A stretch of DNA of 64,000 nt from Dicyema japonicum (taxonomy: Eukaryota; Animalia; Dicyemida): assembly GCA_011109175.1 (NCBI GenBank), contig RDEW01000002.1:1244676-1308675 (forward strand), in the 5' to 3' direction. The notes under the pieces are model-generated. The model saw only the letters and a program-made list of their open reading frames with translations. It did no database searches and was not told the DNA's origin. Both the position numbers and the translations under genes were made by a program. Position 1 is the stretch's first letter; each line of letters opens with the position of its first letter. Below are positions 6,382 to 64,000 of the stretch, piece by piece.

Positions 6382-9349
6382 ATTATTATTAAAGCACTTT
6401 CACGAAAGCCATAATGAGTACAGCCCCGCATGTGCAACACTCAAAGAAACAATATTTATAGTTAGTCTTTTCCATCTTCCTCTGTCGAATGCGAGTGATC
6501 TCAATTCGTTCAGGTCGTCCCCCGTCTTTAGATTTTTTCTCACACGATTTAATTCTTTGTTTAAGGCAGTCAGAAGTGTCGATCTAGGTCGTCCGCGGAA
6601 GGGTTTTTCGCAACTGTCAAAGTAATCTTCCATTGCTTGTGCGTCCGGGTTCACTCTTAGTACATGCCCAAATAGCCTCCACCGGGCATCTATCACATCC
6701 TTGCTGATGTAAGAACACATACACTTTGTAGATACCAGTGGTTGATATTCTACGTGGACACTCCATTCCGAGTAAGCTTCTTAGTTGCCTTCTATGGAAC
6801 GAATCCAGTTTCAATAGTTCGTTGAAGGAACTTCCCCATGTCCCAGCGTTGTACAGTAGGATCGGTTCACAAACGCGTTGTAAAGCCTGCATCTGATGTC
6901 AATTCCCGCATTTGCCAATGTTTTCCTCCTTAGTACATCTTCAGCGTCTCCTAGTAGAGAGCCGAGCTTATTAGTACGTCTCCATCTTTCATGAGTAATA
7001 TCGTCTTCCATAATTTCAGTTTTGTTACATTTACGCTGAGAAATTATTTCTCAAGCTTCGCAGGTGCATTTTTTAGTAGGTGTTGGAATGTTGTCACGTC
7101 CCGTGATACGAAATCCACATCATCCGCATAAGATGTCTATTCTATGTCTCCTATATAGCATTTACGGAGGTTGCGGAGTGCAGATTCAAGGTATATGGTG
7201 AATAGTAAAGGGGAGAGGGAATCACTCTGTGGTGTCCCAATCGTTGTTTTGAAACTGCGGGAAGTTGCTCCTTCTGTCTTCACAAATAGTCCTGTGTTCG
7301 CAAGTAGTAGTCTGATTATCCTAACCGACGATTCATCCAATATTTGTTCAAGCACATTCATCAGTTTCTGTCTGTTTATTGAGTCGAAAGCTCTGGAGAG
7401 ATCTATTCCCAACACGGTTGTTGCGCTCTTGAATCTTTGGTGCGTTGCGCAGCGCCATCTGTGGCTCCATACAATGTCTGCCGTAGACCTCCCTTCTCGG
7501 AACCCACTTTGACTTGCTGGTAGGTATACATCGCCACACCCTTTATCCGGCTTAGTGCAATGTTTGCCAGCACCTTGCGTATCGAATTCAGAAGTATTAT
7601 CGGGCGGAGATTTTTTACTGGTCCTTTTGATTTGTTTGTTTTTGTATGGGTATTAATAATCCATTTCCAAGTCCTAGATCGGTATTAGTTTCAAAGACGT
7701 CATTTAGGGTTTTTGCAATTGTGTCGCTAAGTTTTTTTGGCCCATATTTTAGGAGCTCAGGGCTTATGTTGTCCGGCCCAGCACTCTTGTTGTTCTTCAG
7801 TTTATCGCTAATTCCACCTCTTCCACTGTAATTGGGATTTTTAGCGCCTTTGCTTCTCCCTGGAAAAGGGGAAAGTCCTTATTTTCTTAATTCAACAGTG
7901 TTTCGAAGTGTCGTGCAATCAATTCTGCTTTTTCTTCCGGGTTACCTACGAATTTTCCATCTTTGTCTTTGATGTGAAGGGTGTTTTGTCCTTTCTTTGT
8001 CCGCAGCAGCCGCAAAGCCGCATACATCCTTGAATTGTCTTTTAGGCATTCCACATCTTTTAATAGGGATGTAATAATTTCCCGTGAGTGTTTTCTGTTC
8101 ATCTTTTTGATTTTCCATTTTAGTTCCCTTTGTTGGATATTAAGCTTTTTTTATACTCTCGTCTGACGTGTTTGCCTCTTTTAGCTGTAGCTCTCTACAA
8201 TGTTTTGCAATATGGCACGTTCGGGAAGTGATTTAATTTTAGGGCGTGATGATTTCGGACTCCAAGGCATATATTGGCCGACTTGGAGATTTGCCTGCTT
8301 TGTTTGATCCCACAGAGTTTGTACTGATGATTCCGGTGCGGTATTCTCCATAAGAGTCTCGATTTGTTCGTGATATTTAGCTCTACAAGTGGGCTCTAAC
8401 CACAATTTTTCTGTCTGAAAGTATATATTGGGTCTTTTTCTCGCCTTCTTCGCGTTTTCAATGTATGTTTTCCCAGTCAGGTGTTTTTTTACAGAAAGTT
8501 TTGCAATGACGATCCTGTGGTCGCTGTCAGTTGTTGTCCCCTGGTAGGAACGTGCATCATTTAGCAGGTATTTATCAGACTTTCGGCATATAATGTAGTC
8601 GATTTGATTATATATTTTCACGGTCTCCCCACAGAGTTTTTTCTTTGTCCGTGCCACGAGGTCTTGTGGCAAGCTGAGTACGTGAAGGCCGTGTTGCACA
8701 GGAAAGGTATTTGCCTCGCAGAAGTTACCAGAGAGGCTCCAGATGCATTTCTCCTTCCGCCCGTGTCGTCCAATAGAGGATTCTTCGGGACCCATTTGCA
8801 TTCCGGCCTTTGCATTCATATCCCCGCAACAAAGACAAGGACGAAGAAGCATTTTAGAGTATGTGTTTGATTGTTCTGAGTAGAATTCCTCGAGCTCACC
8901 GAAGGATTCATGATTACTCGTCCACAGTGTGGTGCATAGACTTTAATGACAGTTAATAGACTCTTGGAAAGGAATAGTTTATTTAGTTTGACTTGTAATA
9001 CACATATTCGGTCGTTGACTCTCCAATAGCGATGTAATTTTTTAGGTAATCCACGTATAGGGCAAATCCCATGCCGTAGTGCTTGCATTCAGTTGGGAAG
9101 AGAATCAGTCGGTAGTTGTTTCATATCTCATCGCGTCCATTTTCGATTTTCATCTTTTCTAGGCAACCAATAGATATTTTGTATTTCGAGAGATCGTCAC
9201 AAAGTACTTTCCTTGTCCAATCTTTCGATATTCCACGTACGTTGAACGTCATTAGCCTGAGTTCCTGATTGTATAATGAGTGTTTTTTAGACATTTTTCT
9301 TGGCCGTGGTACAGAGAAGAAACGAGGCACGTCACCACCTCACCAAACA
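6382..9349 (-). mobile_element. Full-length degenerate RTE-clade LINE (APE+RT), family A
   Basis: TFNVRG, NQIDYI, DSDH, IDLSRAFDS, YADD, RWRLFGHVLR and RGRPR motifs; (TAA)n tail; TSD agtactt at 6375-6381 and 9350-9356. Confidence 0.93.
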
Positions 9350-9605
9350 AGTACTTGTGCTACATATAAGAAGTTTCCAAGCCAAAGTTTCAAGAAGAAT
9401 GCCCAATATAATTATATTTTATTTTGAAATTTAATATTTTTTAATTTATTACTATTGAATATTGAGTGAAGTCTGTCAGATTTTTGTACTATTAATGACT
9501 AATATTTCTAAAATAGTGTTTTTAGCAGTGAAAAGATTATACCACAATTTAATTTGGGTGTGGCAAACCATTATTTAAATAGCTGTTTTTGACTTATGAC
9601 CATAA

Positions 9606-10719
9606 ATGAATATATTTGTGGGTGTAGAAGGAGGAGCTACCAATACAACTGTAGTCGTTCTCGATTATAAAGGAGATGTGTTATCCCAAACTTCAGGGGA
9701 CCGTCAAACCATTGGGTATTACTGATGATTAGCCAAAGCATATTGGGTATGAGGAATGCATAAAGAGAATCATGGAACTAATAAGAGATGCTCTTAAAGA
9801 AGCAAATGTTACAACTTCACGCGCAATTGTATGATTGGGTGTAATTATGAAGGGACTTGCTTTGGCAGGAGTAGATACATCAGATTGTATTCAAAAATTT
9901 CTCAATATTTGTTATGAGAATTACTCAGAGTTGGGGGAAAGTTATAGCATTGTCAATGATACTGTGGGGTCAATATATACAGCAACACCAAATAGTAGTC
10001 CTCTCTAATATTTATAGGTGGGATATCTCTGATCTCTGGAACAGGATCAAACTGTCTTTTACTAACGGAAAGTGGAAATAAAATAAACTGTGGAGGTTAT
10101 GGAAATTTGTTGGGAGATCAGGGATCTGGTTGAGACTTATTATAAGCAAAGCATATTGGATTTCTGAAAAGTTAATCCGAACAATAATAAGTGATTCTGA
10201 GGGAATTAAAAAATCAAATTATTCAATTAAGAAGGCTAAAAACTTAATGATGGAGCATTTTGAGGTTATTTATAATATTACATTTAGTTATCTCAACTCA
10301 CTGATCTTCTCACACTGTTTTATGAACAATACAATGTCTCTACGATTGCTTCTATTGCCAAACCTCTCGCTGGTTCTATTTAACTTTATTCAGATTTGGC
10401 CTTTGAGGGGGATCCTTTCTCGAAATCACTATTTTATAAGGCTGGCAGAGATTTGGGGAGACATGTGACTGCTGTTCTTGAGAAAACAGGGGATGAAACA
10501 GTCAGAGATATAGTCTGTACAGGATCTACATGGAAAAGCTGGGAATTGCTTAAAGATGGATTTATGTCAGGAATGGGATCACATAGTGATTACCGATTAC
10601 TATATCTCACTAAAACAGCAGCAATTGGAGCAGCATTGTATGCAGCTAAGAATTATAATATGGACATTGAGGATTACTGCTATGATAACAACTTTGAGAT
10701 TATATATTCTAACATATAA
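9606..10719 (+). CDS. NAGK: N-acetyl-D-glucosamine kinase (6 introns of 21-24 nt; one apparent missing G at ~9696)
   Basis: VGVEGGAT, SNHW, GLALAG, NDTVGS, LISGTGSNC, GGYGNLLGDQGSAYWI and GSTWKSWELLKDGF after GT-AG splicing. Confidence 0.92.
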
Positions 10720-60900: not shown

Positions 60901-61021
60901 AAGAATTAATTATACAAACGAATTTATAACACATTTTGAGATTTAGAGAAGCGCGTTCTCTACGGGTCCAAATGATACACATCTTTTAATTGCAATATGA
61001 GAAATGAATAAGTTGTAAATA

Positions 61022-63909
61022 AGTACTGATCGTTGTTGTTGTCGTTGTTGTCGTCGTTAATATATACAGTTCTCTCTCCTATTATCTATTCATGTCTGTT
61101 TTTATGATGTACTACACGAAGACACCTCATGCAAAGGGTGCAGAGTATCCAATTCTCGCAAGTGCGGGATTCGATGTTCTGTATGTGTTGGTTACTACCA
61201 CATAGGTTGTGAAAAACTATCCAAGAAAATTGCTCGATCACTTCCCTCGTGGTCGTGCCGGTCGTGCCGTCTGGAACTCACTAAAATTGAACTTCATGAT
61301 CATTTTGTGTCATCATCTTTATCAGATCTTCTGGAAGCCATGTCTCCGGAGGATTTTCTGGTTTTATTATCAAACACGCGACAAAGAAAAATTATCCCTG
61401 TCAGGATCCCCAAGGCTTCCCGGATCTCAATTGCTTCTGCCCTTTCTTCTTGCATTGAGAAAGCTGTGTCCAATGGCTCGAAAAAGGATTGGATGGTTCT
61501 TTTCTCTTTCCCTGTCCTGGCTATGGGGTTAGAGCGTAAGCCTGCCCCATCTTCTCGGAAACCCTCTCTATCCCATGTCCTGAAGAAGCGCGTGAGTGCC
61601 TTTATGGATTCATGGGAGTCCCTGGCTGAAGAATTATTTGTTTCACCAGTTGATTACTTCCCAAAGTCCAATTCCACACAATCCAGTATGGCTCCTGAGA
61701 GGCTTCGCTCTCGTGTCAGGAGGAAATTGATGGAGGGCGATCTTACTGCCGCAGTTCTAACTGTTTGTACGGATTCTGACCCGGTGAAAGCCACTCAGGA
61801 GACACTCTGTATATTGGGACAGAAACATCCTCCAGAACCAGAAGACTTTTGTAAACCTGTTCGTCCAGAACAATCTATGCATGATATTTCCACTTCAGCC
61901 ATTTACAACGCTCTTTGTTCTTTCCGAAGAAGTAGCAGTGGAGGAGTTGACGGTCTCAAACCTGGCCATCTGTCAGACTTGGTGTCCCATTCTGTCGGCA
62001 GGCCTGGATCGCTACTCTTGGGGCGAACCCGGGATCTCGTAGCTTGCATGCTTTCCGGAAACGTTTCCGATTTTGGTCGGAATCTCCTCTTTTCGGCGAA
62101 TCTAACGGGCCTTGGAAAGAAAGATGGTGGTATTCGCCCCATTGCAATTGGAAACGTATTTCGACGTTTATCCGCAAAAATGGCTTGTCGTTTTGTTATC
62201 TCCCGAATTTCAGCCGAATTTTGTCCTTCGCAGCTTGGTGTCGGAATCAATGGCGGCTGTGAAGCTGGGATCCACGCAGTGAGAGAATTTGCGTCACAAT
62301 CAGCTGAATTGAATGTTGAGGACAGAGTTTTATTCAAATTGGACCTCCGGAATGCCTTCAATTCAGTCAGAAGGGACACCGTCCTTGATACCTGTAGGAG
62401 GAGGATTCCTCAGATTTATCCCTTTGTATATCTCGCGTATTCGGATCCATCCCCTCTTGTTTTTGGCAGTGGAATTATTTCGTCCGGATCTGGAGTTCAA
62501 CAGGGGGACCCACTCGGTCCTCTTCTATTTTCCTTGTCTATCGACCATATTGCCCAGGACCGTTGCACTCCACTGAACGTCTGGTATCTGGACGATTGTA
62601 TTCTCGGTGGAAGTCCCGATGATATTCTCTCCAAAGTTGCGTCGATCAGAAGTTTGTGTGGAAAAATCGGTCTGGAATTTAACAATGAAAAGTGCGAAGC
62701 AATTAATCTGAATTTGAGTTCCGATTCATTCTACCTTTTTCATAGAAAACTCTGCGAAATCATCCCAGGGGTTAGGGAGACTCATATTGATTCTCTCGAC
62801 TTCCTTGGGTGTGGGAATTTGGTAAACCGGGTGAGGGAGTTATTGGAAGGCAAGGTGTCATGTCGCCTTTTTTATGCTAAAGAATTGTCTTTCTCCCAAA
62901 CTCCTTTTTATTCTACGGGGATCCCCATGCTACGCGAAAAAGACCTTCTATCGTTAATTGATATGGATATTTGGTCAACGATGGGGTCCATTCTTAATGT
63001 TCGTTTTGATGATTTCGGATGGTTACAGGCCTCACTCCCTGTAGCCTGCGGTGGTTTGGGTCTTTCTCTTCCTTCGGACGTTGCTTTGGGCGCCTATTTA
63101 TCTTCGTTCGGCTCGTCAAGGCGTTTAGTGGATACGGTCCTTCACTCTACTTCCGGACAAAACGTACCGCTGACGCCGTCGGGAGCTTGGGATGAATGGA
63201 TGAATTTGTACCTGAATGCTCCGGAAGTAGAGTGAAGAAAATGATGGTAAAAAATATCTTACCATCATTTTCTTCAATATTTCTGTTTATTTCAGTATCG
63301 CTTCGTCTTGGTCTTAAATTGTGTGCCGAAAGGAAATGCCGCTGTGGACGTTGGATCGATCCTTTTGGTTATCATCCTTTGTCATGCAAGATGAGTGCGG
63401 GTCGTTTCCCCAGGCACTCCTGTCTTAACATGACATTAAATAATTCCCTTGCCTCTGCTGGACACCATTGCCTATTAGAACCTGCTGATCTTTCCCGAAA
63501 CGATGGAAAACGCCCTGATGGGATGACGACTTTTCCATTCGCCAACGGACGAAACCTGATCTGGGACGCGACGTGTGTTGATACTTATTCCCCGTATAAT
63601 TTGGTTGTTTCTGCTTCAGACCCAGGACATGCTTCGAAGCAGGCCGAGGAACGAAAGAGGAGGAAGTACCAGAGAATTTCGGAGGAGTATCTTTTTGTTC
63701 CATTCGCGGTGGAAACGTCAGGAATCCTTGGCCCCCAAGCAGATGAGTTGGTTCGTAAGATCGGCTCCATGATTCAAGCTGTGACCACGGATCCGCGAGA
63801 GACTGGTTGGTTCCGAAAACGTATCTTGTTGGCTATTATTAGGGGAAATAGCATGGTCATTCAGATGCCTTAATTTAATTTTTACATTTAAAAGTGTTCT
63901 TTAAAAAAA
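61022..63909 (+). mobile_element. TSD-bounded CRE-clade non-LTR retrotransposon: PHD finger + RT + CCHC/RLE
   Basis: TSD aagttgtaaata at 61010-61021 and 63910-63921; poly(A); IRPIAIG, LDLRNAFNS, QQGDPLGP, WYLDD, C.CG....H...C, RH and KRPDG..WD; PHD in frame from 61121. Confidence 0.92.
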
Positions 63910-64000
63910 AAGTTGTAAATATTCATCAAAATATAAATATGTGGATTCATTAATTTCTGACTTGCAGATTGAGGGTGCGACAAATAACTTTCATTTAATA

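Follow-up and report, generated by a model that had tools for sequence, protein, structure and literature searches.

A retrotransposon family of Dicyema japonicum with a PHD finger ahead of its reverse transcriptase and restriction-like endonuclease

Near the end of the 64-kb window analyzed here (64,000 nucleotides of the Dicyema japonicum contig RDEW01000002.1), positions 61022-63909 hold a copy of a non-LTR (long terminal repeat) retrotransposon that encodes a PHD finger ahead of a reverse transcriptase (RT), a CCHC zinc knuckle, and a restriction-like endonuclease (RLE). The window contains exactly two occurrences of the 12-mer AAGTTGTAAATA, one at 61010-21 and one at 63910-21 (0.03 expected by chance), and a run of A directly precedes the right one. 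This target-site duplication (TSD), which the initial annotation had used to bound the element, therefore defines the copy as 61022-63909 and places the finger inside it. An undeleted copy would measure ∼3.05 kb, sister copies being longer by ∼44 bp and ∼123 bp at two deletions. The features of the copy are as follows (L-numbers here and below are our handles for loci and copies elsewhere in the genome).

61010..61021, + strand: left TSD, exact 12-mer AAGTTGTAAATA
61022..63909, + strand: whole non-LTR retrotransposon copy, 2,888 bp, bounded by the TSD
61030..61058, + strand: microsatellite-like (GTT/GTC)n 5′ leader (Tandem Repeats Finder, period 12, 2.4 copies)
61092..61094, + strand: family start codon, out of frame in the window copy
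61100..61104, + strand: T5 run, 1 nt short of the T6 found in 19/21 copies; frameshifts the window copy
61130..61267, + strand: C4HC3 PHD finger (Cys1 at 61130, His at 61199-201, Cys8 at 61265-67)
61268..62116, + strand: N-terminal extension from PHD to RT, with an IPxxxR motif (here RIPKASR)
62117..62806, + strand: RT fingers and palm (YLDD at 62585-96; Pfam RVT_1 57.8 bits, residues 353-582 of the 61061 frame)
62855..62934, + strand: RT thumb lesion, from the alignment with L002, L003, and L010
63225..63297, + strand: filler that replaces the RT-RLE junction (73 bp where other copies have ∼196 bp)
63337..63387, + strand: CCHC zinc knuckle, C-x-C-x9-H-x3-C (conserved ligands, R2Bm alignment)
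63388..63870, + strand: restriction-like PD-(D/E)xK endonuclease (RH, E-P, RPD with Asp at 63517-19, WD-x-T, K...KY)
63871..63909, + strand: stop codon, ∼29-nt 3′ untranslated region (UTR), and A7-9 tail
63910..63921, + strand: right TSD AAGTTGTAAATA, a perfect repeat of the left 12-mer

The finger is a PHD finger and a genuine domain of the family. Counted from 61022, the RT frame has no stop between 61061 and the stop codon at 63233-35, and its translation, after LHEDTS from 61112, gives the C4HC3 spacing C-x2-C-x11-C-x2-C-x4-H-x2-C-x13-W-x-C-x2-C, just as the initial annotation had read it. Two observations count against the call. The PHD model PF00628 aligns to the family's own sequence over its full length (1-47 of 47) at 17.9-18.6 bits, which is under Pfam's 24-bit gathering threshold, so that of the two domains that the initial annotation expected a profile search to recover from the window translation, RVT_1 is returned (57.8 bits) and the PHD, at the cut-off, is not (17.9 bits); and L005, L010, L012, L014, and L017 have lost 9 bp, removing the last Cys pair or Cys8. 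This Cys pair is encoded by a 9-bp direct repeat (GTCGTGCCG twice, 61244-61261), and the losses, which are scattered on the copy tree, are probably the outcome of recurrent slippage at the repeat after insertion.

With the single score below the cut-off, the PHD call rests on family-level evidence. Eighteen relatives with complete N-termini carry the motif at the equivalent position. When these were aligned with the sequence of the window family itself, the eight zinc ligands proved invariant in 19/19 and the Trp before Cys7 nearly so, whereas the extra Cys of the window family is not conserved. All 19 aligned members match PF00628 at E ≤ 0.01 (best 3.9e-9), and the alignment profile, when run against the Protein Data Bank (PDB), finds the PHD fingers of DPF2, PHF8, PHF2, BPTF, Alfin-like proteins, TAF3, and Pygopus at E-values of 7e-11 to 1e-7. 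An AlphaFold2 model of the finger reaches a mean confidence score (pLDDT) of 82, with values above 90 across the core, and the best 50 Foldseek matches to the PDB are all PHD fingers, the top one being Alfin-like 1 (TM 0.86, rmsd 1.2 Å). The objection that the domain might not fold as a PHD finger thus fails.

The family frame was reconstructed from a search of the genome (67.5 Mb, 377 contigs) with the element, from which 30 copies were fetched and compared singly, no consensus being built. The search gave 449 candidate fragments, among which at least 40 scored copies have a BLAST identity of 92-97%, and many copies are 5′-truncated. Among 17 long copies, substitution-only divergence is 0.4-3.7% and the tree is star-like, which points to a spread of the family in what, judged from sequence, was a fairly recent burst. 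In the window copy the sole ATG upstream of the finger (61092) lies in the +1 frame directly before the T5 run, i.e., one base out of frame, as had been noticed. The run is T6 in 19 of the 21 copies that keep the 5′ region, and T5 in only the window copy and L011; with T6, the ATG opens a frame, MSVFYDVLHEDTSC..., that reads directly into the PHD finger (L002, L003, and 17 other copies). It follows that in those copies the ATG starts a single PHD-RT-CCHC-RLE frame, and the suspicion that it is the true family start, shifted here by an indel in the T run, is borne out. In L010, L022, and L023 the frame is unbroken from the RT into the RLE domain. Pieced together from several copies, the full family frame would encode ∼980 aa; it is whole in 0/30 fetched copies.

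The ends of the element vary. The length of the 5′ leader and the extreme 5′ end differ from copy to copy: L002, L004, L006, and L026 have a 5′ end ...CGCGTGGAGAT ahead of a (TTG)n leader, and the window copy starts AGTACTGATC. At the other end, the 3′ UTR of the window copy is a minority tail variant that is also present in L005.

Further families of the same lineage, at 41-45% protein identity, are found in the genome, some of them with uninterrupted frames of ∼970-1000 aa. The families with complete 5′ parts, represented by L031 (1290-4298), L033 (1712-4612), and L037, each start with a PHD finger of their own; L033 has an unbroken 967-aa frame, and its PHD scores 27.0 bits, above the Pfam cut-off. 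Between the finger and the RT, an IPxxxR motif was seen by eye in the N-terminal sequences of the homologues read and is common to them, and phmmer alignments of L033 extend through the equivalent N-terminal extension in many relatives. At L032 (contig C20, ∼7100-10000) all six frames are open over ∼2.8 kb; this stretch is most likely a run of N, and the 1,949-aa “open frame” reported there is then an artefact.

The remaining domains identify the element as an RLE-type non-LTR retrotransposon, as the initial annotation had proposed from the letters, on the strength of RVT_1, the CCHC knuckle with its PD-(D/E)xK nuclease, the A-tail, the TSDs, and the 5′ truncation of other copies. Compared with solved structures, the RT matches R2 proteins best (E = 1e-5), followed by a group II intron RT. 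In an alignment of 25 CCHC-RLE sequences, the knuckle ligands C87, C89, H99, and C103 are invariant, as are R112, H113, E134, P146, D147, D163, T165, K193, and Y197 of the nuclease. The sole meaningful PDB match of the RLE profile is to residues 932-996 of Bombyx R2 (E = 0.005), with the knuckle aligned to R2Bm residues 932-957 and the “PD” of the family placed over the KPD ending at R2Bm residue 996. The AlphaFold2 model of the RLE has a pLDDT of 92, and the top seven Foldseek matches of the C-terminal model are R2 proteins (zebra finch, turtle, silkworm; E-values of 3e-6 to 9e-5, probability 1.0), after which come archaeal NucS/EndoMS and Hjc. A Pfam scan of the window open reading frames (ORFs) and L033 gave no exo/endo-phosphatase (APE) family, and Pfam gave no match on the C-terminal ORF of the window copy. 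The C-terminal part is the CCHC-plus-RLE module of R2-like elements.

The fusion of a PHD finger to an RT-RLE protein extends far beyond this genome. The RT-RLE region has 808 matching relatives at 37-48% identity, in Octopus, several Lepidoptera, Diaphorina, and many marine metagenome contigs, and precomputed Pfam annotation lists PF00628 beside PF00078 in 10 of the 120 matches listed. In a maximum-likelihood tree of the RT-RLE region of 117 relatives and the window family, the latter falls in a clade of 35 rows with an SH-aLRT support of 100 that also contains three Octopus proteins and marine metagenome members. Every N-complete member of this clade (18/18) has a PHD finger, and no other head is found among them. 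The remaining 83 rows include 26 with a single C2H2 finger and a few with PHDs or other heads; in the sister-lineage protein P0090, an RFX DNA-binding domain (Pfam, 81.5 bits) takes the position of the PHD. At E ≤ 1e-30, an exhaustive search with L033 returned 2,043 clusters formed at 50% identity, and the ESM Atlas includes PHD+RVT_1 clusters with 201 and with 97 members. A search with the N-terminal 330 aa of an intact sister family gave only two matches in a set of 5.8 billion proteins, because this region is too divergent for word matching. These sequence comparisons show that the PHD-RT-RLE fusion is ancestral to its clade, widespread in animals, and abundant in databases. The rarity first attributed to the fusion was hence overstated, since a search for other such fusions finds many, and the objection that they are already common applies in part.

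Other N- and C-terminal arrangements also occur on this chassis. In P0043 a Cys-rich start leads into a further PHD finger, P0115 and P0066/71/74 have Cys-rich N-termini with no Pfam match where the window family has its PHD, and P0013, P0027, and P0055 form a PHD sub-lineage in which a ubiquitin carboxyl-terminal hydrolase (PF00443, up to 125 bits) follows the nuclease, giving the order PHD-RT-RLE-USP, with USP denoting the hydrolase.

The window copy itself is dead, a decayed relic disabled in at least four ways. The T-run frameshift (T5 for T6) is one; the next is a net loss of 44 bp at 62855/56 with further losses of 3 nt and 1 nt behind it, together leaving ∼26 codons of the conserved thumb out of frame and ∼16 codons missing; and the third is the 73-bp filler at 63225-97, which brings in the stop at 63233-35. 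Because of the T-run, thumb, and junction lesions, the RT and RLE parts of the copy sit in different frames, the fourth defect. Contigs from public sequencing runs, which are of DNA type and may stem from the same sample as the assembly, cover both insertion junctions and the filler (one contig spans 63196-63293). In these contigs, the T6 form appears in runs X2, X4, and X5, with T5 kept in part of the depth, and there are 46 letters for 2 at 62854-57 and an extra C after 62934; the T6 and undeleted forms come from sister copies.

The filler is a mosaic that contains an 18-nt perfect inverted repeat (63233-50 / 63259-76). Its piece 63248-63298 derives from an unrelated repeat present in at least 10 copies in the genome, and the inverted repeat is a snap-back of this piece. 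The same joint between repeat and element recurs 77.5 kb downstream on the same contig (C112:1385474-1385526; L044), where a 5′-truncated copy of the element lies within the unrelated repeat, flanked by a 9-bp TSD (ATTTCAGTA). The filler looks like the product of RT template switching or of break repair templated by another locus (L044). A 49-nt GT...AG stretch at 63248-96 was considered as a tiny intron that would restore the frame and was rejected, the stop at 63233-35 preceding it and the piece being part of the unrelated repeat.

Copies of the element end in poly(A) and are flanked by 8-12-bp duplications; their sites are locally AT-rich, and insertion is not sequence-specific. Nine credible TSDs of 8-12 bp start with A and are otherwise unrelated, with no target-sequence consensus among them. 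The 100-bp insertion flanks have a GC content of 0.31 compared with 0.36 in random 100-bp windows, a difference that is gone at 1 kb, and several copies sit next to or within others of the family. By analogy with the R2 paradigm, the protein would bind its own RNA, the RLE would nick one DNA strand, the RT would prime cDNA synthesis on the polyadenylated RNA from the nick (target-primed reverse transcription), and a second cut would fall 8-12 bp from the first. The PHD finger, judging from its position only, might act as a targeting head that tethers this complex to nucleosomes via a histone tail and not via DNA sequence.

The RLE-type long interspersed nuclear elements (LINEs) comprise CRE, R2, R4, NeSL, and HERO; HERO, which is found in deuterostomes and other animals, has many non-specific families, whereas CRE elements are mostly target-specific, inserting in spliced-leader genes or other repeats (PMC4640811). 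As described, HERO is compatible with the present element in being RLE-type, with a single ORF, non-specific insertion, and an animal distribution. CRE is likewise RLE-type with a single ORF but differs in its target specificity, and this hallmark, site-specific insertion, is not seen in the element, given nine unrelated TSDs and local AT-richness only. Oikopleura dioica is described as having a single non-LTR lineage, the peculiar Odin (PMC4122922, PMC8008620). The putative likeness to Odin lies in a compact genome with tiny introns, a multi-copy young LINE (∼2% divergence), and several divergent families. In RepeatMasker, Odin is filed under CRE, and this is probably where the CRE label of the initial annotation, a candidate assignment for the element, came from. 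With R2 (R2Bm, R2Tg; PDB: 8gh6, 8ibw, 9dou, 9nl3) the element shares the single ORF, N-terminal head, RT, CCHC knuckle, and PD-(D/E)xK nuclease, and R2 is both the best structural match for its C-terminal 264 aa and the only solved non-LTR-element match for its RT, although the RT match reaches only E = 1e-5 and the RLE identity is 14-19%. R2 differs in having C2H2/Myb heads and one 28S rDNA site, where the element has a PHD head, dispersed insertions, and a poly(A) end. As a whole, the locus is very probably best explained as a dead mosaic copy of a putatively Odin-type family whose frame runs PHD-extension-RT-CCHC-RLE.

That the PHD finger is a targeting head acting through histone-tail tethering is a tenable proposal, if somewhat short of a probable one. 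It draws its plausibility from the position of the finger, which sits where sister lineages and R2 carry DNA-binding heads, and from its nearest solved relatives, which are H3-tail readers; its mark preference cannot be read from sequence. Several features weigh against it. At the positions that we take to form the K4me3 aromatic cage of PHF8/BPTF-type readers, one of three is aromatic (the Tyr two before the His, a position often aromatic in the alignment); the residue before Cys1 is non-aromatic, and a conserved Asn stands four after Cys2 in a basic N-x-R-K loop. The register of the acidic residues ahead of Cys1 varies, and the “HED” of the window family is not conserved among the 18 homologous fingers. 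The conserved basic loop, between Cys2 and Cys3, might just as well function in binding nucleic acid or in nuclear import. We find it quite conceivable, though on the whole rather doubtful, that the domain has a real PHD fold and is no histone reader, binding instead the target DNA or the element RNA, mediating nuclear import or docking to a host protein, or stabilizing the N-terminus. The conserved loop, the incomplete cage, the missing conserved acidic N-terminal residue, and the DNA-binding heads at the same position in related lineages all speak for such a non-histone ligand, as does the presence among the fold matches of fingers that bind something other than H3 (PHF2 with VRK1, MLL3 PHD6 with H4). 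Yet by both profile and fold the nearest solved fingers (Alfin, BPTF, PHF8/PHF2, TAF3, Cfp1, Pygo) are mostly readers of the H3 tail, and the Trp-x-Cys loop of such readers is kept.

The initial annotation had seen in the HED motif a likeness to readers of unmethylated H3K4 of the BHC80/AIRE type, which could steer insertions away from the compact genes. Acidic residues do precede Cys1 by 2-5 positions in the family (HEDTSC), as they do in roughly half of its homologues, the full K4me3 cage is absent, and insertions lie in locally AT-rich DNA, several adjoining other copies. However, neither the motif, which is confined to the window family, nor its register is conserved among the homologous fingers, so that the argument built on it falls; by profile and by fold the finger matches K4me3/me2 readers best, not BHC80 or AIRE; and the clustering of old copies may reflect selection against genic insertions instead of targeting. 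We regard this specificity, with insertions steered away from active genes, as improbable. Practically no credence is left for the reading of the finger as an exon captured from the host or as a chimera of the assembly, peculiar to the window copy, for which only the miss by the ORF finder and the out-of-frame ATG in this copy can be cited. Sister copies on many contigs carry the finger in frame, and it recurs in three other families of the genome and in 18/18 N-complete clade members from other organisms, and lies inside the TSD, with public contigs covering the 5′ junction. The chimera reading is refuted by the clade-wide occurrence, the sister copies, and the three further families, and the claim that the finger belongs to the element stands. 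A more far-reaching form of the targeting-head proposal, in which the PHD is a working nucleosome-tethering head and the clade a natural head-swap series on one RT-CCHC-RLE chassis, strikes us as rather unlikely; such a series would comprise PHD, single C2H2, RFX, and Cys-rich heads, some members having added a C-terminal ubiquitin hydrolase.

PHD fingers are known from other transposable elements (TEs), namely ORF1 of CR1-like LINEs, Chlamys Penelope-like elements, a Chlamydomonas Gypsy element, and Rehavkus DNA transposons, and a chromatin-guided, less harmful insertion by way of a TE PHD has already been proposed (PMC8557442, PMC9940879). In those TEs the PHD is found in a separate ORF1, inside the RT or endonuclease, or in Gag-Pol, whereas here it forms the N-terminal head of an RT-RLE polyprotein, in a place that C2H2 and RFX heads take in sister lineages. 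A functional analogy is offered by the chromoviruses, Ty3/gypsy elements whose integrase carries a chromodomain, a reader of histone marks that has been shown experimentally to act as a targeting device. The reader fold and the integration chemistry are different there, and for the present element a reader function is putative. A literature search whose scope did not extend to the original Odin paper turned up neither an account of such a head on an RLE-type LINE nor a text containing “CRE-Odin.” The N-terminal PHD head is real and old, and apparently under-described; the window copy, for its part, is just one more dead representative of a type of element that is already known.

The usual picture of RLE-type LINEs is that of sequence-specific elements with C2H2 or Myb heads as guides. 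With a large animal-wide PHD lineage and its C2H2 and RFX sisters on one chassis, the role of the head becomes testable by comparison. If the element is indeed Odin-like, it would also bear on how the only LINE lineage left in Oikopleura endures in a genome so densely packed with genes. If the head-swap proposal were true, RLE-type LINEs could shift between DNA-sequence and chromatin targeting by exchanging one small module, and the heads would be ready-made parts for retargeting R2-type gene-insertion tools. R2 relatives are being engineered for site-specific gene insertion (PMC13580325, PMC11331408).

Finally, the genome contains tandem histone gene clusters at L049-L053 (contig C343, 126-153 kb) and on contig C20 (56-64 kb). 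The H3 that they encode presumably differs in its tail from canonical H3; such a divergent tail, if real, matters for testing histone-tail readers in this animal.

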